Part shown: one piece after another, positions 12,665-55,823 of the stretch | Numbering within the stretch: the stretch's first letter is position 1 | Layout of the letters: every line of letters begins with the position of its first letter | Assembly: GCA_003427395.1 (NCBI GenBank) | Contig: BFEA01000020.1 | Location: 2,767,552-2,824,067, forward strand | Source of the DNA: Chara braunii | Taxonomy: Eukaryota; Plantae; Charophyceae | Length of the DNA: 56,516 nt | Direction: 5' to 3' | Made by a program: the position numbers and the translations under genes | The notes under the pieces: generated by a model | The model's database searches: none | What the model saw: only the letters and a program-made list of their open reading frames with translations | What the model was told of the DNA's origin: nothing

Positions 12665-14210
12665 CCGGGTGGAAGAGGCGCGGAGGCGGTGCTGCAGAGG
12701 CACGGAGGGGAGGCGGAGAAGTACGGAGGAGGAGCGGAGAAGGCACGGAGGACGTGCGGAGGAGCTGTGGAGGAGGGGCGGAGGAGTGGAGAAGCTGCGG
12801 AGGAGGGGGGCAGGAGGGGCGAAGGAACGGAGAAAAGCTGCTGAGGAGGGTATAAGGCGGGGAGGAGCAAAGAAGCTAAGGAGGATGAGTGGGGGAGGAG
12901 GGGAGGAGAGGAGAGGCTGCCGGGGATGAGCGGGGAGAAGGTGCGGGGAAGCTGCGGAGAAGGGGTGGAGGAGGAGCAGAGGAGGAGCAGAGGAGGAGCA
13001 GAGGAGGCGCGGACGAAGGGCGAAGGAGGGGCCGAGGAAGGGCGAAGGAGGGGCCAAGGAGGGGCGGAGAAGGAGCATAGGAGTGGAGGTGGGGCAGAGG
13101 AGTGGAGTGGAGGACAGGCGGAGAGGGAGCGGAGGAATGGCGGAGGCGAGGAGGATGAGCAGAGGACGGGCAGAGGCAGAGCGGAGAAGTTGCGGAGGAG
13201 GAGGGGCAAATGCGCGGAGAATGAGCGGAGGAACGGGGGAGGAGGGGTGAAGGAGCGGAGAAGCTGCAGAGGAGGAGCGGAGGAGGAGCTCCAGAGGTGG
13301 GCTGGATGAGCAGCGGAAGAGCAGCAGAAGAGGCGCATAGGATTGGCCAAGAAGGATGGGCAGAGGAGCAGACGAGGCGTCGAGGAGGAGAGTGGGAGGA
13401 GCGGAGGAGCGGAGGAGGCACACATGAGGAGCGAAGGAGGCACAGAGGAGGAGGGGGAGGCGGGGCAAAGGGCGAGCGGAGGAGCTGCAGGAAAGGTGCG
13501 GAGAGGGAGCGGAGGACGAGCGGAGAATGTGTTGAGGAGGAGGGGCAGAGGAGGGCCTGACGAGAGGAGCAGCAGTGGAGGGGCAGCGGAAGCGGTGTGG
13601 ACGACTAGCGGAGGAGGAGGGGCAAAGGAGGGGAGGGGGAGGGGGGGAGCAGCGAAGGAGGCATGGAGGATGAGCGGGGCACGAGGGGCGGAGGGGAGGA
13701 GGATGAGCGGAGGAAGAGGAGCGGAGGAGGGGACGAGCAACAAAGGAGAGGCGCAGAAAAGCTCTGGGGGAGGAGCAGGGGAGGAGGGGAGGAGGGGAGG
13801 AGGGGCGGAGGATGAACGAAGGAGGTGGGGCGGGGGAGCGGAGAAGTAGCGGAGGCGGCGCAAAGGATGAGTCGAGGAGCGACAAAGGAGAGGAGAAGCT
13901 GTGGAGAAGGAGCAGGGAAGGATGGGAGAAGCAACAGAGGATGAGCGGACGATGGGCGGAGGGGAGCAAAAAAGCTGAGGAGTGGGGGAGCAGGGGAGGA
14001 GCAGCGGAGGATGAGCAGGGGCTGAGTGGGGGAGGAGGGGCGAAGGCGCAGAGGATGTGCGGAGGCTGAGTGGGGGAGGAGGGGCGAAGGCGCGGAGGAT
14101 GAGCGGAGGAGAGGTGGTGGAGCGGAGGAGCAGCGAAGGAGAGGGGCGAAGAAGCTACGAAGGATGAGAGGACGAGGGGGACAGAGGAGCGGGTGAGCAG
14201 AGTGGGACAA
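12665..14210. repeat. Degenerate purine-rich (GGA/GGAGCGGAG) low-complexity satellite
   Basis: About 1.5 kb of GGAGGAGC(A/G)G variants. Long Pro/Ser/Leu ORFs appear in several frames simply because stop codons are rare in this composition. Confidence 0.9.
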
Positions 14211-17868: not shown

Positions 17869-18516
17869 ATGTGCACAGACTACCGCGCCCTCAACCGGAT
17901 CACGATCAAGAACAATTACCCCTTGCCTCGCATCTTCGAGCTTCTTGATCGCCTCCATGGTGCCAAGTACTTCACAAAGATCGACCTCCCGAGTGGCTTC
18001 CACCAGATCTGCATTCACGAAGAGGATACTCATAAGACTGCCTTTCGCTCTCGCTTTGGGCATTACGAGTTCCTTGTGATGCCTTTTGGCCTCACAAACG
18101 CATTTGCAACCTTCCAATCTCCTATGAATCACATTTTTCGCGATCATCTCGAAGTCTGTGTCGTCGTCTATCTTGATGATATCCTAGTCTTCAGTCCCAC
18201 CTTCGAGATTCTCCTTCAGCACATTCGTCGGGTCCTCTCTATCCTCAAAGACCAAAAGTCCTACGCCAAGCTCAGCAAATGCACTTTTGATGCCTCAAGC
18301 GTAGAATACCTTGGCCGAATTGTATCCGCTGACGGCATCCACATAGACCCCTCGAAGGTCATCGCCCTTGTCGAGTTTCCCCCACCTACGACCTTGCTGC
18401 AACTTTATTCCTTCCTCGGTCTTGCCAACTACTGCCGCCCCTTCATCCACAACTTCTCTGAATCTCCTAACCCCTCCACGAGCTCACTCGCAAGAAAGAG
18501 CTTTTGCATGGAATGA
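17869..18516 (+). pseudogene. Gypsy reverse transcriptase domain
   Basis: MCTDYRALN...YPLPRI...KTAF...YEFLVMPFGLTNA...YLDDILVFS...KC.F...EYLG. Stops and frameshifts on either side. Confidence 0.95.
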
Positions 18517-31300: not shown

Positions 31301-34300
31301 GTTGGTGTGGAGAGCATGGAACACTGTGACCGCCTTGCCATACAACACATTCGCAGGCAAGATGTGCCCGGAGGAGGTCATGGCCGATTCCCAACGCTCC
31401 CTACAAGACGAAGTTGAGCCGTTGTACCTGGAACCGGAGGATGAGGATAGGCACATGAGGGAGTACGACGACGACGACGGGCTGAACGACAAGATATCCC
31501 CGGGCTGTGACGAGACCGATACCACCCCAGCATGGGAGGATACAGCCTGGGATCCTCCGCCGGGAGAAGGGCAAACGACAACAGCGGACGAACCGGAGGA
31601 ATCAGAGCTAACAGCGCAGGGACCACGGCAGCAGCTGATTAGAGACCCCCCCCCCCCCCCCCAACTGTACTCCGCACCACAACCGCTACCCCTAACACAG
31701 CAACCCGTCAAATGTAATCAAATGGNNNNNNNNNNNNNNNNNNNNNNNNNNNNNNNNNNNNNNNNNNNNNNNNNNNNNNNNNNNNNNNNNNNNNNNNNNN
31801 NNNNNNNNNNNNNNNNNNNNNNNNNNNNNNNNNNNNNNNNNNNNNNNNNNNNNNNNNNNNNNNNNNNNNNNNNNNNNNNNNNNNNNNNNNNNNNNNNNNN
31901 NNNNNNNNNNNNNNNNNNNNNNNNNNNNNNNNNNNNNNNNNNNNNNNNNNNNNNNNNNNNNNNNNNNNNNNNNNNNNNNNNNNNNAATCAAATGGACAAC
32001 AACAAAAATCAGTATGGGACAGTGAGAATGGACTGGCAAACCAAGGGGTCTGACGATCCACAGCTGGAACGTCAACGCCCTGGTCAACATTCTCGACGCA
32101 TATGACAAACTACGAGACATCAGACTCGGCCTCACAGAAAAAAGGAAAGCCCACACCCGACATCATTCTCCTACAAGAGACCCACCAATCCAACCTCACT
32201 AACCACACCAGAATAAAGAGGACAGCGGAGAAAAGCCTAGGGGGATGCCCTTTCTCACTGTGGTCCAAAAAAGCGAACCAAAGCATCCGCGACACAACAA
32301 TCCTCATACCAACTACTTCCAAAATCTGGTCTGAGGGTCTGGTAAGTACTGGCGAAGGAGACACAGCGGAAGGAAGATGGTCATGGATCCAAATTACATG
32401 GCAAGGGGAAGAGATCAGAATCCTAAACCTATACGCCCCCAACACGGAAGTTGAACGCCTAGCTTTCTTCGACCACATGAAATCATTTCTCCCGCCGCCG
32501 ATGCCGCTAATTATAGCAGGTGACTGGAACACTACGATGGACCCCAGCCTGGATCGCATTTCCCGGGCAGTGTTGTTGGGGCCCACACGAGCGAGCACAC
32601 ACATACGGAACATCATGACAGAGTTCAACTTGGTCGACCCATTCTGAATCCTCCACCCACGCACGAAAGTCTTCTCCCTAGTCAAGAGGAACCGATCTAA
32701 CCACACATAAATATCACGAATCGATTTCTTCCTAATTTCAGACATTCTACAGGGAGCAATTAAGGAGGCCAGTATCCTACAGCAGCAGACTTTAAGGGGC
32801 TCGACCACAAACCAAAAACTTCAACTCCTCGGTAGAAAAAGGACAAGGCTTCTTTAGACTCAACAACTCACTCCTCTCCACTGAACGCATGACCGAGGCA
32901 GTCAGATGGAACTGGTCGTTCATACAGCAAGACGAGAAGAAACACCAGGACAGGCACAAATGGTTCATAGACAACTATATGGACCTGTCTCAGACGGTCT
33001 CAGCAGAGTCTAGAAGCATAGCAGCAGACCGCAAACACAGGAAGGAGGAACTACAAATCGTACTCGACATCGTAGAAACCAACCTAGCATCTGATCCCTC
33101 TAACTCCTCCTACCACGACCTACTCCAATCAACCAAAGACGAACTAAATGAATGGAGAAGATGGGAACTCAAAGGCCTACAAATACGCACCCGTATGAAT
33201 GACTACACCCTCCAAGATCAAGGCCAACGCAAGGAATAACACAATCGAGGGGCTGAAGGACCAAAGTCAATCAGCGCAAACATGGTAAGAATAGCCAGGT
33301 CCTTTTACGCCGACCTCTACGAGTCCAACCCCCCCCCCCCCCCCCCAGCGAACATCATCGCCCGCCTGCACATGATAATCTACCTAGAGAGAACGGTCAC
33401 CCAAAAACAAACGTAGGACTTGGACAAACCAATCACCATAGGGGAACTNNNNNNNNNNNNNNNNNNNNNNNNNNNNNNNNNNNNNNNNNNNNNNNNNNNN
33501 NNNNNNNNNNNNNNCCCCCCCCCCCCTCCAACAACAAATATCAACGTCCGCCAACACATTGACCTGCCTAGAAAGAACGATTACCCAAGAACAAACGGAG
33601 GACTTGGACAAACCAATCACCATAGGGGAACTTCACCAGGAATTGATGGCCTGTCCAAAGAATTCTGGATCCAGTTCTGGCCAACACTGGGCAACGACCT
33701 CTTGAACTTCATCAACGACAGTATGGAAAAGAGAGGCCTGGGTCAATTTCTAAGCACCAGCGTAGTGTCACTAATATACAAAAAAAGGAGACAAGGAGGA
33801 CCTCAAGAACTACAGACCAATCTCACTTCTCACAACGCCATACAAAATCCTAGCAAAAGCATTAGCCAACAAAATCATAAAACTAACAGACAATTGCTTT
33901 CACATCAACCAAGCAGGATTCATCCCGGGTTGATACATTCTGGATAATGTGATGGCTCTAAATGAGGCAGCAAAGAAGATCACAAAAAAACGAATGCAAG
34001 CAGCGATCTTATTCTTCGACTTTGAAAAGGCGTACGATCAAGTCAATTGGGACTTCCTCCACAGCTGCATGGAAAAGATGGGAGTCGGCCCAAATTTCTG
34101 AGAATGGGTTAAGAGTACTCTAAGGGGATGCCACTACCACGGTGCAGATAAACAAAATAATGTCAGAAACCTACCCGATATCGAGATTCGTCCGGCAAGG
34201 CGACCCCCTTGCACCCCCAATATTCCTGCTCATAATGGAAGCCATCGCATCTTTCCTGCGCAAGGACCCATCCATAGACCGCCTCACCGAACAAAACTGC

Positions 34301-39525: not shown

Positions 39526-40718
39526 CTCAGAGCGCAAGCATCGGTGCCTGCCCCCATGTCGAAGATGAATTGGTTGGTGTTTATGATCTGCTTAGGATTT
39601 TTTTTTTTTTCCCATATACAAAACGAATGTCGTCATAAACAACAAAAAGGTTGAAAAAACTCCAAAACGAAAAACAAACAAACAAAACCCCAGGTTATGA
39701 TGAAACCTCCAGAGGGCGTTAAGACGTTTTCTGGCTGTCAGAATATATCAGAATCTCCCACTTGGAAATACACGCTTTTTCATTTTTTTTTCTTTTTTCC
39801 TTTTTATTATTTCTGCATATATTGCATTGAGCCTCACTGCTCGACACCTTGAGCACACACGCACATTGAGAGATGCACGAAATCCACTCTGGAGTCCAGA
39901 AATATTCCTCACGGGGCTTCACTTCACCCCATCTCACTTTACCTATTGGTTAAGTGATCCGCCTCTTTAGTGGTAGGTCATAGGTTCGGTTCCTAGTGAG
40001 TTGATCTTGGACTTCTTGTGTATACATCCACTGCTACTCAGCTCTATCACTACTACTGACTTATGCGGTATGGCCGCCTTCCCTCTCAGTGCAGCGCTGC
40101 CCAGCAGGGCTCTTGCGTGCATGTCATTCGCGGATAGCGCACAAGCGCTTCAGCAGCACTTCCAGACTTCTCACGAATGAGCAATCTCCCGGAAATGTGG
40201 CTGGCCAGTCCTTATATTGACTTGGTTGAAGTCTGGCTGGTGCTGTGGGTTGTCCCTCAGTGCATTTGGGTCGAGTCTGGGTACACCAGGTCATGGTTGA
40301 TGCATGCTGGGGTGGGGTGAAATATTCCTCACGGGGCTTCACTTCATCCCAGTTCACCTATTGGTTAAGTGATCCGCCTCTTTGGTGATAGGTCATAGGT
40401 TCGGTTCCTAGTGAGTCGATCTTGGACTTCTTGTGTATAAAATCAAGCACTTATGAACCAGTCGGATGCCCTTGCCGTAGTGCTTGGTTGAAGTCTGGCC
40501 GGTGCCATGGGTTGTCCCTCACGTGCATTCGGGTCGAGTCGAGTCTGGGTACACAGGGTCATGGTTGATCCATGATGGGGTGGGGTGAAATGTCCTTCAT
40601 GGGACTTCATTTTCATCCCAGCTCACATTACCTATTGATCAAGTGATCCTCCTCTTTGGTGGTAGGTCATAGGTTCGATTCCTAGTGAGTTGATCTTGCA
40701 CTTCTTGTGTATAAAAAC

Positions 40719-40776
40719 AAGCACTTATGAACCGGTCGGACGCCCTTGCAGTAGTGCTTGGTTGAAGTCTGGCCGG
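40719..40776 (+). ncRNA. Candidate minimal HDV-like ribozyme fold (second copy at 40445-40502)
   Basis: P1 AAGCACT/AGTGCTT, P2 CCGGTCGG(AC)/(GT)CTGGCCGG, P3 ACG/CGT (consensus of the two copies) around loop CCCTTGC, followed by GG. The catalytic-C position reads TGAA. Confidence 0.4.
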
Positions 40777-40873
40777 TGCCGTGGGTTGTCCCTCACGTGC
40801 ATTCGGGTCGCGTCATGGTTGATCCATGCTCGGGTAGGGTGAAATGCCCCTCACGGGGCTTCACTTTCATCCC

Positions 40874-40945
40874 AGCTCACTTTACCTATTGGTTAAGTGA
40901 TCCGCCTCTTTGGTGGCAGGTCATAGGTTCGATTCCTAGTGAGTT
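40874..40945 (+). ncRNA. tRNA-like cassette within the repeat unit (not a functional tRNA)
   Basis: 72 nt. Acceptor stem AGCTCAC/GTGAGTT, D-loop-like TATTGGTTAAG, anticodon-like hairpin CCGC-CTCTTTG-GTGG, B box GGTTCGATTCC. Equivalent cassettes occur in the other units. Confidence 0.7.
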
Positions 40946-41021
40946 GATCTTGGACTTCTTCTTGTGTATAAAAACAAAATTATATTGACTTGGAGTGAGC
41001 CTCAATTGACTTACCGTGAGG

Positions 41022-41474
41022 GCACGGGTGCGCAGCCCGTAGTTTGTTTCGTTNNNNNNNNNNNNNNNNNNNNNNNNNNNNNNNNNNNNNNNNNNNNNNN
41101 NNNNNNNNNNNNNCAGAACTGCTTCCAGATTCAGACAAAATCATCCAGGCCGATTGGGCCGAAGTGGGTGGGCTGGGCATGAGGCTGTAGGCCTGGGTCC
41201 ACGCCGTTCCATATTTGAATTTCAAGGACCTGCGGCCCCCAAGCCGTTTCAAAATATTTTAGACCACGGCCACCTACCGGTTCCCAGGAAAATGCCACGG
41301 GCAAATACCGGTCCTGCATTTGCTTGAACTACGGCCCCCCTCCCTAAATGCCAGTGCCTTTCATTTTATCAGCCTTTGAACGACCAATGGGCCCGAATGA
41401 ACGACCGGTATAACGAACGACGACGAAAATGTCTCCGGGGGGGGAAACGCAACCCTGACGGGCTGCGAACTCGT
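41022..41474. mobile_element. Small insert with imperfect terminal inverted repeats inside the left Gypsy repeat
   Basis: ACGGGTGCGCAGCCCGT at ~41023 versus ACGGGCTGCGAACTCGT at ~41458. Absent from the right-hand repeat. Confidence 0.5.
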
Positions 41475-44400
41475 CCCAACCTCTGCTTCCCTTGGCTTGA
41501 CTTGGACCCGATACCACATGCCCACAGCCTGCTTGCTTCAGAATGTCAAGGCCTGGTACTTTTCCCGAATTTTCATTGGTGTGCTGCTGCTTGAGTCTGT
41601 GAGTCACAACTTGTCATCTGTGGAACATGACTTTTGACTGTGGGTTGTGACTCTTGCCTCTGGGACATGACTTTTGCCTGGAGAAGTGTCCTTTGCCTGT
41701 GGGACATGACTTTTCAGTACGACTTTTTAATATGAAACGTGACTATTGCTTATAGGACGCAACCTTTGACTCTGGGCTGTGACTGTTCACCGGGTGCCTG
41801 TTGGACTTGACTTCTAAGGTACCCAACTGTGACCTTTCAGAACTGGCCGACTTGGCCTCCCTTGGCTTGAGACCTAGACCTTGAAATTCGAATTTGGGGT
41901 CTGCAGAGTGGAATGCCTTTCACTCTCGCCGGCCTAATTTCTAGGTCCTCCGAAAAAGTTACAATCTTTACCTATCATCTATGTTGATTCCTCGCCTGGC
42001 TCTTTCATAGTAAGACACTATGTGTGGTGCTGTTTCAATTAGCTCACCCCTTATAAAGCAGCGATCTTCCGAAGGCTTTGGACAAGTGAATCTGACTTTA
42101 TGCTGCCGCTTGGGCCTACCCCTGCGTCCGGATCTATAGACATCCTGAGCAACAATGCGGTCGACGTCATACTTGCCATGCATATCGGGAGGAACCATAG
42201 ATCTGCGAGATGGAAATAGCTCATTGCTGACAAAAGGGAGCAAGGTATGAAACACCAGGTAAGTCTGCAAATGCGAAGGAATCTCAACAACACAGGACCA
42301 TCCGCGTCACCAATCACGTCGAGTACCTGCCACGGTCCCCTATACGCAGGCAATAAGTTCTCCTCTGGGTTGTGGTGTTTATTTGCTTGTTCTGTCATCT
42401 GATGCTGTGCCTTTCTGATGTTCTCTCTCACCTTCTCTAAGTCTTTCTGATATTGCACAGCAAACTCTCTAGTCCCCATCAGGGTTAAGACAATCGATGG
42501 GCCTACGTGGGTGCCAACCTAAATGTAGTTCCATAGGCGTTCGTGCTGTAGCCAAATGCACAAAATTGTTATAGCCACTACCGACCTTTGCTAGATGTTC
42601 ATCCCGATCAATCTGATCTGGTCGGATGCACATACACAGCACCTGCTGCAACACTTTGTTCATCTGCTCGGTCTGTCCATTTGTCTCAGGATGTGTGCCT
42701 GAGGACCTAGTCAGTTTGGACCCATAAACATTCACGAGTTGTTGCCAGTGCTCACCCGTGAATCTCGCATCCCTATCACTTACAATAGTCAAGGGATGCC
42801 CGTAGTCTTTCACCCAATGATTAAAGAACTCTCAAATTACTAAATCTGTCCTGGCTTCAACAGGAAGCGGCACAAAAACAACAAACTTGCTAAATCTGTC
42901 CACTATCACCATAACTTGGCTCTTCCCATTCCTACTTCTCGCCTTAGTGTCCATAAAGTCTATAGACTGAGTCTCCGGGACCCGACGGTATAGGCAGCAA
43001 TCTAAGTAAACCAAGGGGAGGCTGCATGGAACTCTTGTTCGGCTGACAAACTTTGCAGCCTTGTACACAGGCTATACAGTCATGTTTCATACAAGTCCAT
43101 GTGTAGGAACGCAGGAGGTTAGCATACGTCTTCCTCCAACCAAAATGTACCTCGGTATCGTGGCATTCACCTAGGATTAGACTGCGAATCTGTTCACTGT
43201 TTGGGATGCACAATCTGTCGTGCACATCTGTCTTCTCAAGCAGCAGTTCCTGAGTCACTCTATAATCCGGAATCCGGAACTTCATGTGGTGTTGTCTGCA
43301 CCTTGCCAATCAACTGACTATAGATTGGCTCACTAGTGTAGGCAGACCTAATCTTCTCTTGTAATTCACCGCCCGCATCCAAGTGTGTTACAATAGCACT
43401 GAAGAAATTTGCTCACTACTTAGCGCATCAGCAACAATGTTATATTTCCCTTTCACTGGCTTCAGTTCGAAGTAAAACTGGTCAATCTCCCCAGCCCACC
43501 TTGTCAACTTAGGTGTCATTCTAGCTTGGGTCTTCAGCCAGCGAAGTGACTTATGGTCTGAATACACTTTGAAATGTCAACCTAGGAGGTAGTGTCGCCA
43601 ATGATTCAAGGCTTCTCTGAGAGCAAACAACTCTCCCTCATACGTAGAAGCGGCGACCTTCTCACTAGGTAGTCTACAGGACATGAACTCAACAGGATTG
43701 TACCCATTTCCATCATTCTGTTGGAGTACAACACCTATCCCGTATTAATTGGTGGTTTAGAAATGTCGACCTAGGAGGTAGTGTCGCCAATCATTCAAGG
43801 TTTCTCTAAGAGCAAACAGCTCTCTCTCATACGTAGAAGCGGCGACCTTCTCACTAGGTAGTCTACAGGACATGAACTCAACAGGACTGTACCCATATCT
43901 ATCATTTTGTTGGAGTACAGTACCTATCCCGTATTGACAGGCGGCAGTGGTAACGATAAATGGCAAGGATGGATCAACGATCTTCAGAACCGGGTACTCT
44001 ATCAAGCACTTCTTTAAAATCTTAAAGGCTGAAGTACAATCTTTATCCCATCTTCGGACTGTCTCTTTCCTCAACAGCCTATGCAACAAAACAACTACTA
44101 CAGTAAAGAGTCCTACGAACTTGCGATGATAGTTGGCCAGACCAAGGAATGATTGTAGTTCCGTCAAAGTACGTGGTGTCAGCCAATCCTTGATTGATTT
44201 TATTTTGGCGTCTTCCAACTTAATTCCATCTCCATCCAACACATCTCCCAAGCACAAAACCTGACGCTTGGCCGATTCACACTTCTTTGGGTTCAACTTA
44301 AAATGTGCGTCGCGCAACTTACTTAGCACTAAACGTAAGTGTTGTTGGTGTTCCTCTAACGACGTGCTAAAGATCAGAATGTGTTTATTCCCATCTGCAC

Positions 44401-46714
44401 CCAAGGTTTGTGTTGAGCTATTACCGGGTGCTCTGGTACGGCTGCCAAGTCCTACCTCTACCTCTACCCCTTGGGAAAGGAGAACCTCTACCACCTTACA
44501 ACAGACCATAACCCCTACCTCCCGCGTAGTAGCTACCTTCGCCACCACCCCTCTAGGTAGTGTGTCCTTGTCCTCCACCTCGTCCTCCACCTCCTCTACC
44601 TCAACCTCTACCTTGTCGCCCTCCCCCACAGATTGCAACTATCGCATAGTCCCCTCCCCGGGCTACTTGGTTGTTGTTATCTTCTAGACCATAATCTATT
44701 TGGTCGTATGGTAACGACTCTACACCTTCCTCGAAGGTGACCAGCAGATTATCCATCCCCTCTATACTACCGGATATCGTCCTATTCTTCCACCTCTTAC
44801 CGGCTTGCAGATCCTTCTAGTAGTGGCAATAGTTCGCCTCTTGCAGGAAGCCGACATGGTCTACAACAATCTTACTAAACTTTTCATAAGTCATCCCCTC
44901 CTCTTTTGTACGAGATATAACTTGGTTTTAAGGGGTCTTAAGGGGTTCAGGAAGCGCTCTAGCAAAATTGTTCAGGATCTGAGTGGGGGTCAGTCCGTGT
45001 TCCGGACATTGTAGCAACTCATCCATAATGGCGCTAAGTGGCAATAGTTTGCCTCTTGCAGGAAGCCGGCATGGTCTACAACAATCTTAGTAAACTTTTC
45101 GTAAGTCATCCCCTCCTCTTTTATACGGGGATATAACTTGGTCTTAAGGGGTTCAGGAAGCGCTCTAGCAAAATTGTTCAGGATCTGAGTAGGAGTCAGT
45201 CCGTGTTCCTGACATTGTAGCAACGCATCCATAATGGCGCTAAGTGTCGACGCACTCACTTGCGGGCACTAATGTCGAGTATGAGGGACTCAGTACCACG
45301 GGCTAAGTTCTTATCTTCGAATCGGTCTTTCAAGGCCCTGAGAAAATCCTCTATTCTAGTGCGCTGCGAGTACTACACCATCGAGGTACTGCCTCCTTCA
45401 CCAACGAAATTGCGCAGCTTGCTGCATCTCGCCCTAGACACGAACTCACAATAAGTATGCGGTCCCAATATGGTGTCAATTGTGCGTGTACGCGTCCTTC
45501 GCCGCCTCCCAATGAAAAATGATATCCTCCTTCCCAGTGTATGTCCAAGGAAGTTTTACCTTCATTTTCTCCCTTTGTTCTCCTCCCTCAGACTTATCTC
45601 CTTCCTTTCGTCCATCATCCTTACTAGACCCTTTCCTTTCTTATCGCCATCCCCATCATCGCCACCAACGAAATTGCGAAGCTTGCTGCATCTCGCCCTA
45701 GACACGAACTCACAATCAGTATGCGGTCCCAATATGGTGTCAATTGTGCGTACATGTACGCGTCCATCGCCGCCTCCCAATGAAAAATGATATCCTCCTT
45801 CCCAGTGTATGTCNAAGGAAGTTTTACCTTCATTTTCTCCCTTTGTTCTCCTCCCTCAGACTTATCTCCTTCCTTTCGTCCATCATCCTTACTAGACCCT
45901 TTCCTTTCTTATCGCCATCCCCATCGTCGCCACCATCTCCACCGCCACCTATCTTAACTGCAACAATGGTGTTAGTCAATTATTGAGTGAAGATATCGTC
46001 TAATTGGCGTGCATATTGTAGGACCCTATGGTCCACTTGGCTAGATGACGCAATAAGATAAGTACTCCAGATGCCCTTAAACTCCTAGTGTTGTTCTACC
46101 TTTCCAACGGCTCGTTGAAGCGCAGAGAGTTCTTGGGTGGTATGTAGCGAAGTGTCTGTTAGAAGGTTCCAACGTTCCTCAGTTTCTACTTGCTTCCCTT
46201 TCTGCTCCTTAAGCAAAGCCTACAGTCTCTCCCCTTCCTCCTTCAATCTTTTCTTCTCCTCAAATTCTTTTCTTCTTGCGGCCAGCAACTTTTGATTGAG
46301 TTCACCCTTCTCCTCAATCAACAACTTCCTTTCCTCTTGATCCTTTGTTCCTGCCAACTTCGCTACAAAACGATCACTCTCTTCATCAAGCTCTATCTGG
46401 TGCCCAAATTTCTCCACCCAGTCCAAGTCCTCAACCTGCTGGAGTCTCAACTACTCGATACCTTGAGCACACACACACACATTGAGAGATACATGAAATC
46501 CACTCTGGAGTCCAGATATGCGCAACTTAGGGAATCCAACAAATCATCACATTAAACAGTTTCAGAGACCTAGTCACCAAGCGCTCAACAACACAGAATT
46601 CAGCAATCCAATACCAGCATCCTCATCTAAGGTAGGTGACTCTCTTCTCTCCCTGGCTCACTCTCCCTCTCTGTCTTCTCTCTCAATTTGTCCCTCCTGG
46701 TCTTCTTCATGCAT

Positions 46715-46759
<45 letters not shown>

Positions 46760-47399
46760 AGAATCTAGACTCTGAATACATCCGCTGCCACTCAGCTATA
46801 TCCCTACTACTAACTTACGCGGCTATGTTGCCTTCCCTCTCAGTGGAGCGCTGCCCAGCAGGGCTCTCGAGTGCATGCTATATTCGCGGATAGCGCGCAA
46901 GCGCTTCAGCAGCACTTCCACACTTCTCACGAATGAGCAATCTCCCCGAAATGTGGTTGGCCAGTACTTATATTGACTTGGACTGAGCCTCAACTCGTTC
47001 CAACCTCTGCTTCCTTTGGCTTGACTTGGACCCAGTACCACATGCCCACAGCCTGATTGCTTCAGAATGCCACTGCTCGAGTCTGTGAGTCACGACTTGT
47101 CATCTGTGAAACATGACTCTTGACTGTGGGTTGTGACTCTTGCCTCGGCAACACGACTTTTGCCAGGAGAAATGTCCTTTGCCTGTGGGACACGACTTTT
47201 TAATACAAGACATGACTTTTGCCTATAGGACACCACCTTTGCCTCTGGGCTGTGACTGTTCACCGGGTGCCAGTTGGTCTTGACTCTTACGGTACCCGAC
47301 TGTGACCTTTCTGAACTGGTCGAATTGGCCTCCCTTGGCTTGAGACCTAGACCCTGAAATTCGAATTTGGGGTCTGCATCGTGGAATACCTTTCAATGC

Positions 47400-47820
47400 T
47401 AGTCAAAACCCTACCACGTTCATGCATGCAGGCCTTATGACGATTCCTCCAGAAGGTGTTAGGACGTGTTGAGTCTGTCAGAATATATCAGAATCTTCCA
47501 CTTGGAAATACAAGCTCTTTCAATTTTCAATTTTTTTCCTTCTTATTATTTCTGCATATATCAGTCAAAACCCTTCCATGTCTGAATGTCGCCATAAACA
47601 ACAAATAAACAACAAAGACTTGAAAAAACTCCAAAAAGGAACAAACAAACAAAAACCCAGGGTATGACGAAACCTCCAGAGGGTGTTGGGACATTTCAAG
47701 GCTGTCAGAATATATCAAAATCTCCCACTTGGAATTTCACGCTTTTTCAATTTTTCCCTGTTTATTATTTCTGCATATATCAGTCAAAACCCTACCACGT
47801 TCATCCACGCAGGCCTTATA
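47400..47820. repeat. ~220-bp AT-rich tandem repeat, continued on the other side of the Gypsy element at ~39630-39822
   Basis: Recurrent CTGTCAGAATATATCA.AATCT.CCACTTGGAA...TTCTGCATATAT(CAGTCAAAACCCT). Confidence 0.8.
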
Positions 47821-53648: not shown

Positions 53649-55823
53649 TTAACCAAATTTTGCAGAAGTAGAAGCTATTAAAAATGCAGCGTAAGTAAAT
53701 ATATAACCTACAGAGAAATGAGATAAACCAACTAATCTTTGCTTGAACAATTGAAAGAGCTACAGGTTTGTCTTTCCAACGAATTAAGGAGTACGTTCAT
53801 GTGCCCAAGCTAGCGTTTCGATCAATTTTTGCCAATGACCACGCCATGAAATAAGGAACATAAAACCTGTTGCCCATATAAGATGGCCAAATAAGAACAT
53901 CCAAACCCATACAAATAAACTATTCATTCCAAGTGGATTATAGCCATTAATAAGCTGAGACGAGTTTAACCATAAATAATCTCTTAACCATCCCATTAAA
54001 TAAGTAGATGACTCCTTAGATTGAGATACATTTCCCTGCCAAAGAGTAATATGTTTCCAATGCCAATAGAATGTTACCCATCCTATCGTATTAAGCATCC
54101 AAAATACAGCTAGATAAAAAGCATCCCAAGCTGAAATATCACAAGTAACACCTCTTCCCGGTCCATCACATGGAAAACTATAACCGAATTCTTTTTTATC
54201 TGGCATGAGTTTTGATCCACGAGCATCTAAAGCACCTTTTACTAAAATTAAAGTGGTAGCATGTAAGCCTAAAGCTATTGCATGGTGGACTAAGAAATCA
54301 CCAGGTCCAATTGTTAAAAATAATGAGTTATTACCATTATTAATAGCATCTAACCATCCAGGCAACCAAAGATTTGCACCTGCATTTAAAGCAAGGCTTT
54401 GATTAGAGGAAAGTAAAACATCAAATCCATAAAAGTGTTTTTCCATGTGTAGCCTGTATACATTGTGCAAAGACAGTTTCAATCAAAATTTGTTTTTCTG
54501 GAGTACCAAAAGCTTGCATTACATCATTATGGACATATAATCCTAAACTGTCAAATCCTAAGAATAAACTAGCCCACTAGCCCTAATTGAGATATAATAG
54601 CTTCTTTATGTTCAAGCATTACAGCAAAAAGTTATTTTCTTCTGGATTATAATCGCCTATAAAGAAAATAGCTCCATGAGCAAAAGCACCTTCCATTATA
54701 AAACTAGCAATATAGTAATATACTGATGATGAGTATACAAAGCAGCTTGAGTAGTAAAATCTTGTGCAATAAAAGCATACGATGGTAATGCATACATATG
54801 TTGACCTACCAAGGACATGATCACTCCTAAAGAAGCTAATGCAAGTCCTAATTGAAAATGAAGAGAATTCTTTAGGGTGTCATATAAGCCATTCTGACCA
54901 CATCCAAGTCTTCCTCCAGGAGGTGTACGAGCTTCTAATATTCCATTTATACTATGGCCAATCCCAAAGTTTGTACGGTACATATGACCTGCAACAATAA
55001 ATAAAATAGCAATAGCAAGATGGTGATGAGCTATGTTTGTAAGCCACAAACTTTGAGTTTGTGGATGAAAGTCACCAAGGTAAGTAAAGCAGTGCCTGCA
55101 CCTTCAGAAGTCCCAAATAAATGGTTCATTGAATCTAGTTCTTGTGCATAGATACTCCAATTTCCCGTAAAAAAATGTTGTAATCCTTGAGGATGCAGAA
55201 TAGAAGTTCAAAAATTGCCCCATCTTAAATGTTGTGCTCTAGCTTCTGGAATAGCTACATGAACCAAATGTCTAGACCAAGCCAATGAACCAACTCCAAA
55301 AAGACTAGATAAATGATGGTTAAGACGAGATTCTGCATTTTTNAACCAAGAAACACTAGGCTTCCATTTCAGTTGTAGATGTAACCAACCTGCTAAAAGA
55401 GCTGAAGTAGATAAGAATAACCAGAAGAGAGCTCCCCTATATAAATCCAAATTTGTATGCATACCTATAGTGAACCACCATTGACTTACTCCAGAGTATG
55501 CAATATTGATTGGACCTGACACTCCTCCCCTAGTGAAAGCCTCTACAGCTGGTTGCCCAAAATCAGGATCCCAGATTGCATGAGCAATTGGACGTACATG
55601 TAAAGGGTCTTGTACCCATTGTTCAAAATTGCCTTGCCAAGCTACGTGAAAAAGGTTACCATATGTCCATTAAAAAATAACAGCTAACTCAGCAAAATGA
55701 GAGGCAAATGATTTTTTATATATGGCTCTCAAAATCATGCGCGGTGGCAATGCCATACCAAATTCGACAAGTGGTCGGATCTTTGGATAGGCCCTGGCTA
55801 AATTTGGGAAATCTCGTTGCCAT
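53649..55823 (-). pseudogene. psaB: Photosystem I P700 apoprotein A2 pseudogene (NUPT)
   Basis: Runs from [12 protein letters not shown]... through [19 protein letters not shown] to [13 protein letters not shown]. Multiple frameshifts, stops and small deletions. Confidence 0.97.

Follow-up and report, generated by a model that had tools for sequence, protein, structure and literature searches.

The tRNA-derived SINEs, including the TSD-(SINE)n-TSD multimers of bivalves and potato, are non-coding elements that carry a tRNA-related module that includes a B box, have an A-rich 3′ end, are flanked by target-site duplications (TSDs) of variable length, undergo 5′ truncation, form dispersed and moderately repeated families and can occur as multimers within one TSD (PMC11481361). 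Their tRNA-like part lies at the 5′ end. The non-autonomous Chlamys Penelope-like elements (PLEs) of green algae, such as MRC1, are short non-coding sequences found as multicopy head-to-tail insertions with frequent 5′ truncation, and Chlamys elements are very abundant in Chara braunii (PMC8557442). Animal non-LTR retrozymes, for example newt satellite 2 and Schistosoma Sm-alpha, consist of tandem 150–450-nt repeats, from dimers to multimers, with TSDs of more than 4 bp when these are present and with structured RNA; their defining features are a hammerhead ribozyme and circular RNAs (PMC7229834). A fourth group for comparison comprises the HDV-like ribozymes of R2/RTE retrotransposons and the minimal theta ribozymes of phages, which have a P1/P2 pseudoknot, a GG after P1, a C-rich loop and, nearby, tRNA-like sequence (PMC10879173). 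Theta ribozymes retain P4, and in both HDV-like and theta ribozymes a change of the catalytic C to U is inactivating, serves as the standard inactive control and has no known rescue; a motif with U was the false-positive control in the theta-ribozyme study (PMC10879173).

Here we describe an insertion at 40226–40979 of a 56,516-nt stretch of C. braunii DNA (contig BFEA01000020.1; the whole stretch is referred to as the window) and compare it with these systems. We regard it as probably an old insertion of a SINE-like non-autonomous retroposon of this alga, made by a LINE or Penelope-like reverse transcriptase from a multimeric RNA template, with no self-cleaving ribozyme taking part. It has the features of tRNA-derived SINEs listed above except that the tRNA-like part is near the 3′ end; it differs further in that the template itself was multimeric, and no LINE-derived tail was found in the window. 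With Chlamys PLEs it shares its short non-coding nature, its 5′ truncation and the multicopy head-to-tail arrangement (2.9 units within one TSD, and other tandem loci in public reads), as well as one opposite-strand, inverted-copy joint of the family, seen in three sequencing runs. Unlike those elements, it sits in unique target sequence rather than in a (CA)n or (C)n microsatellite, and it has a clear TSD and an A-rich end, with no 30–40-bp tail extension seen. Its likeness to animal non-LTR retrozymes lies in the tandem repeats of comparable length, the TSD and the structured RNA, but the hammerhead core CUGANGA is absent from both strands of the array and no Rfam ribozyme matches it. A literature search found no paper on SINEs of C. 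braunii.

The array was delimited by TRF at 40221–40977 (period 274, 2.9 copies, 85% matches), and the inserted block at 40226–40979 is made up of 2.9 head-to-tail units of 219, 274 and 257 nt, all on the forward strand. Flanking it are two identical copies of TTATATTGACTTGG, at 40212–40225 and 40980–40993, that form a perfect 14-bp direct repeat, and the same 14-mer occurs as a single copy at an empty paralogous site (46968–46981, forward strand). The original prediction of one block of three head-to-tail units with a 14-bp TSD is therefore borne out by the tandem-repeat analysis, the direct repeat and the empty site. Unit 1 (40226–40444) is 5′-truncated, without the 43-nt head, and has the tail TATAAAATC. 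Unit 2 (40445–40718) is complete from its head, AAGCAC, to its tail, GTGTATAAAAAC, and has two private features, a 5-nt GAGTC duplication and the only TTTT of the array (40610), the unit consensus being free of any TTTT. Unit 3 (40719–40975) runs from head to tail with an internal deletion of 20 nt, and is followed by four extra A residues (40976–40979), the first two of which could also have been templated by the AAGCAC head.

Both ends of the block carry the marks that had been claimed for them, namely microhomology (CTTGG) at the 5′ junction and a 3′ end rich in A. CTTGG (40221–40225) forms the last five nucleotides of the left TSD copy and also stands before TTGAAG in the units at both internal junctions; the 5′ end is thus a microhomology join, with a true duplication of 9–14 bp. 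The 3′ end reads TATAAAAAC followed by AAAA, and outside the three tails and this terminal AAAA the array contains no run of four or more A. As with SINEs, then, a TSD, an A-rich tail, 5′ truncation and empty sites are all found. The insertion bears the marks of target-primed reverse transcription: a duplication of 9–14 bp, an A-rich 3′ end and a 5′ truncation sealed by 5 nt of microhomology. These features support the view that the block entered as one retroposition-type insertion of a multimeric non-coding element with a putative tRNA-derived, Pol III-type module.

The empty site provides a control for this view. A BLAST search of the flanks against the window placed the array inside one copy of a host repeat, the second copy of which, at about 46.4–47.8 kb, is uninterrupted across the insertion site, and the flank at 40019–40225 is 89.5% identical to 46773–46981. 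In public DNA and RNA reads most copies of the host repeat continue beyond 40225 with the empty-site sequence, and loose-end reads at 40225 carrying that sequence were counted in run X1 (DNA, 39 reads) and run X12 (RNA, 19 reads). The uninterrupted paralogous site and the reads running past 40225 together show that the block entered once and is confined to this copy of the host repeat. This host repeat, to which the flanks belong, is very abundant, with a summed word depth in the thousands in DNA contigs and with poly(A) RNA reads present. The two host-repeat copies (39635–41922 and 46442–47780) are about 84–94% identical by segment, with the segments in permuted or tandem order, and a small tandem repeat of 20/39-nt units (2.5–4.9 copies) lies within the host repeat at 41618–41714.

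The only other occurrence of the unit in the 56-kb window is a fourth, partial copy of 128 nt at 39899–40026 (forward strand), which comprises the leader, tRNA-like module and tail as far as GTGTATA and has no A tail. It stands in place of 257 bp that the paralogue has kept (46517–46772). At all three informative sites this fragment groups with unit 1, from which it is separated by 420 bp, against units 2 and 3. Two independent hits within 200 bp by a family of this abundance would be very unlikely, and we therefore take the fragment to be probably filler DNA that was copied from the adjacent unit 1 when a deletion was repaired, rather than an independent retroposition. The presence of such filler-like DNA next to the array is what speaks for a further explanation of the block itself, the capture at a double-strand break of satellite or extrachromosomal circular DNA with no reverse transcription. 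We consider this extremely improbable, because break repair does not produce a 14-bp duplication, and because the perfect TSD, the end at the unit's only A tract and the 5′ microhomology form the pattern of target-primed reverse transcription.

How much of the array was present in the original insertion can be judged from the differences between its units. Pairwise substitution divergence is 7.5–12.3%, with the smallest value, 7.5%, between units 2 and 3 (the other pairs differ by 9.8–12.3%). This is a point against our preferred explanation in that duplication after insertion could account for part of the array. A shorter insertion, of at least 1.84 units, may have been enlarged later by unequal crossing-over or replication slippage, as has been proposed for the TSD-(SINE)n-TSD arrays of bivalves (PMC11481361), and the length of the array would then partly reflect events at the DNA level. 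The differences in divergence are small, and we think such growth unlikely. It would also leave the conclusion of a multimeric template standing, since the original template still needs a tail-to-head junction when the insertion is reduced to its minimum of 1.84 units. The template must thus have contained at least one tail-to-head junction, and so must have been longer than one unit.

Each unit of about 270 nt is composed of a structured head of about 135 nt, starting with AAGCAC, and a module of about 140 nt in which a leader hairpin is followed by a decayed tRNA-Lys-like cloverleaf, its B box intact, and then by a 33-nt tail that ends in UAUAAAAAC; the tail sequence of the unit is GATCTTGGACTTCTTGTGTATAAAAAC. 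The tRNA-like modules lie on the forward strand at 40352–40417 in unit 1, which carries a deletion here, 40621–40691 in unit 2 and 40875–40945 in unit 3, with B boxes at 40398–40408 (GGTTCGGTTCC), 40672–40682 and 40926–40936, respectively. The B box of units 2 and 3, GGTTCGATTCC, matches the consensus at every specified position, while the A box and D arm of the module are degenerate. In the cloverleaf of unit 3 (fold z = −3.8) the acceptor stem is 7 bp long, the T arm has the loop UUCGAUU and the anticodon loop reads CUCUUUG (anticodon CUU, Lys type); this module scores 17.2 bits against the Rfam tRNA model (E=2.2), below the gathering score of 29. ARAGORN called no tRNA genes in the window. 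The weak Rfam match and the lack of an ARAGORN call indicate that the module is tRNA-derived and not a tRNA gene. The original claim of a tRNA-like cassette with a B box in each unit holds, with the qualification that the cloverleaf is degenerate and the B box perfect in units 2 and 3. Rfam searches of 39700–41050 and of 40690–40800 yielded no SRP match and no second tRNA match at E≤10. We also considered whether the unit might be a diverged dimer, with its head corresponding to the tRNA module, and rejected this: the best local alignment between the two covers 11 nt and was equalled by 112 of 500 shuffles.

The phase of the unit is set by its 3′ end, and in this phase the tRNA-like module stops 33 nt before the tail, with about 155 nt of other sequence 5′ of it. 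The retroposed unit therefore does not have a tRNA-related head at its 5′ end, and this placement near the 3′ end, unlike that in canonical SINEs, which begin with such a module, is a second point against our explanation. It nonetheless suggests how the multimer could have arisen. If the tRNA-like module serves as an internal promoter for Pol III, its degenerate A box notwithstanding, a transcript initiated in one unit would run on into the next, because only about 35 nt separate the module from the A-rich priming tract and no T4 terminator is present in the unit. To inherit a complete promoter and body, a copy would then have to exceed one unit in length, and the same logic underlies the pseudo-LTRs of Penelope-like elements. 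This part of the original prediction, that the promoter of one unit reads into the next, fits the lack of TTTT in the consensus; the ribozyme processing of the transcript that went with it found no support.

That processing had been ascribed to a minimal, P4-less HDV-like ribozyme at each unit junction, which would cut multimeric Pol III transcripts into monomers or circles for copying by a LINE. Several observations favour this idea. Candidate folds can be drawn on the forward strand at both junctions (40445–40502 and 40719–40776), each with an identical 7-bp P1 (AAGCACU/AGUGCUU) that is followed by GG, and with an L3-like CCCUUGC. The array ends within 0–2 nt of the predicted cut, the local fold at the second junction has z = −3.1, and a descriptor of the topology (P1 of 7 bp, P2 of 6 bp, P1.1 and no P4) was matched by 19 of 1000 dinucleotide shuffles of the unit (1.9%) and so is uncommon. 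The proposed HDV topology is thus present at both junctions as far as P1 is concerned. It does not extend to the rest of the fold: P2 (CCGGUC/GGCCGG) is intact only at the second junction and has an A.C mismatch at the first (local fold z = +0.5), P3 is 3 bp at the first (AUG/CGU) and 2 bp at the second (AC/GU), and there is no P4. The descriptor, which 1.9% of shuffles also pass, matches only the junction at 40719, and does so only when P3 is allowed to be 2 bp; with a 3-bp P3 neither junction matches.

Conservation and catalytic residues also argue against cleavage. In contigs of the family assembled from public reads P3 is mostly 2 bp, its first 3′ nucleotide being mostly G and so forming a G.G pair (40476 C>G in seven contigs, 40750 A>G in 11), and in one tail-to-head junction variant L3 reads CUA for CCC and P3 is broken. 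At the catalytic position all three units have U (UUGAA), the change that inactivates the HDV-like and theta ribozymes described above. CpG decay among the units affects 9 of 26 unit-sites (35%), at which rate three independent C-to-T changes at this position would have a chance of about 4%, and no C variant at the position is listed among the family reads. A C does occur 2 nt before the 6-bp P2, but it is paired within a longer helix, and position +1 is A instead of G. Searches with the Rfam ribozyme models (HDV, CPEB3, the drz families, hammerhead, twister and others) returned nothing at E≤10 either for 1351 nt around the array (39700–41050) or for a 111-nt slice (40690–40800), where the filters are laxest, and the whole window gave nothing against Rfam at gathering scores. 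The HDV covariance-model check proposed with the original prediction is covered by these searches and gave no match.

The sequence around P2 points to a different structure. P2 at the second junction can be extended to an 11-bp nested helix, ACCGGUCGGAC/GUCUGGCCGGU, which appears in the minimum-free-energy fold of that junction and uses up the 5′ strand of P3. In the CUA junction variant two changes in the 5′ strand of this helix preserve pairing (C-G to U-G and G-U to A-U), which favours the nested helix over the pseudoknot. An RNAalifold analysis of the three units and the fragment, that is, of four local copies only, found one compensatory pair among 52 and is uninformative. There is likewise no pile-up of RNA ends at the predicted site in oligo-dT RNA-seq, where array depth is about zero. 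We consider the HDV-like ribozyme reading very unlikely, and with no Rfam ribozyme match, a catalytic U in three of three units and an unconserved P3 and L3, the name ‘retrozyme-like’ falls with it. From the sequence we conclude that probably no self-cleaving ribozyme is involved, and that the P1 hairpin and long P2 helix would be ordinary structure of the element RNA. A variant of the idea is that these two helices are a processing signal, either a divergent ribozyme that does without the canonical cytosine or a substrate for host tRNA-processing or ligating enzymes, that releases unit-length or circular RNAs for rolling-circle reverse transcription. We find this highly doubtful. If true, it would represent a tRNA-promoter-driven, ribozyme-independent ‘retrozyme’ lineage in streptophyte algae.

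Beyond this locus the family was followed in public reads, and statements at the level of the family rest on summary tables of contigs from those reads rather than on full copies. In DNA contigs of C. braunii the sequence of the array shows a moderate degree of repetition, its most abundant part being the leader, tRNA and tail module. Tail-to-head junction variants are present, and other loci are also tandem, with joints going back 245+27 and 205+66 nt, giving a period of about 271 nt. A related and shorter tandem family, in which the module at 40837–40953 is joined to 48 other letters with a period of about 165 nt, is commoner than the 270-nt family. Metagenome scans for further copies gave no matches to a pattern of the B-box region, and the 19 loci matching a junction 18-mer were all chance matches of 18–23 nt. 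The forward-strand RNA of the element is predicted to be strongly structured: in unit 3 the folding energy is −106.3 kcal/mol (z = −5.7, as against −3.7 for the reverse strand), and in unit 2 the corresponding z scores are −2.9 and −0.4. Oligo-dT RNA-seq, of which 6% of run X12 was read, covered the array-specific parts to a depth of about zero and showed no unit-length RNA ends or pile-up of molecule ends, in a library type that under-samples Pol III and circular RNA.

These RNA data bear on another route to a multimer, in which an RNA circle of unit length, formed with no ribozyme (tRNA-processing enzymes and tRNA ligase being one possible source), is reverse transcribed by a rolling-circle mechanism primed on the circle's only A-rich tract. 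The coincidence of the 3′ end of the insertion with the single A-rich tract and the insertion of 2.9 units with a truncated 5′ end are what such copying would give, and animal non-LTR retrozymes are thought to move in this way (10.64898/2026.07.22.740005). The oligo-dT reads hold no evidence of circular or unit-length RNA, although a tandem reference hides the back-junctions of circle reads, which then look the same as linear ones. A circle would also have to be reconciled with units that are 7.5–12% apart and with unit 1 variants that are common to the upstream fragment, which a diverged linear multimeric template fits at least as well. We regard the rolling-circle route as decidedly unlikely, and continue to prefer a SINE-like retroposon copied from a multimeric RNA.

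Under this preferred explanation the copying enzyme would have been borrowed, either from a LINE or from the very abundant Chlamys Penelope-like elements of the alga. A LINE is slightly favoured as its putative source by the A-rich end, the TSD and the 5′ microhomology, and by an open reading frame (ORF) for an APE endonuclease in the window; a Chlamys PLE is a serious alternative. A search of the window with the tail revealed no LINE or PLE partner sharing that 3′ tail, its only matches being the four SINE-like copies. Elements of both the LINE and the LTR type are present near the array. The ORFs concerned are an APE-type endonuclease (Exo_endo_phos, a LINE fragment) at 32102–32647 on the forward strand, an RVT_1 reverse transcriptase at 17869–18516, also forward, and an LTR-type RT/RNase H fragment at 43757–44638 on the reverse strand. 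Two other features of the window were recorded. A 232-aa ORF at 53784–54482 (reverse strand) matches photosystem I PsaA/PsaB (Pfam E = 2e-110, profile positions 448–670 of 711), and is a plastid-gene fragment in a nuclear-looking, repeat-rich scaffold that may reflect either a plastid DNA insertion or an assembly chimera. At 12689–14150 degenerate, purine-rich repeats of the GGAGGAG type extend over about 1.4 kb with a spacing of 11 nt (GC 0.60, GC skew +0.46) and give rise to long spurious ORFs on the reverse strand.

The comparison with HDV-like and theta ribozymes thus ends in differences, with U for the catalytic C, A at +1, a 2-bp P3, no P4, no conservation of the motif among family copies and no covariance-model match, and the Chara element is a SINE-like repeat rather than a new kind of ribozyme system. 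Finding an HDV-like ribozyme in a streptophyte alga would have been of note, but the evidence speaks against one here, and a false lead is removed. The promoter near the 3′ end of the unit would be inherited only through tandem copies, in a manner comparable to the pseudo-LTRs of PLEs. Finally, the insertion documents, with an empty-site control, the retroposition of a multimeric tRNA-like non-coding RNA in Chara braunii.
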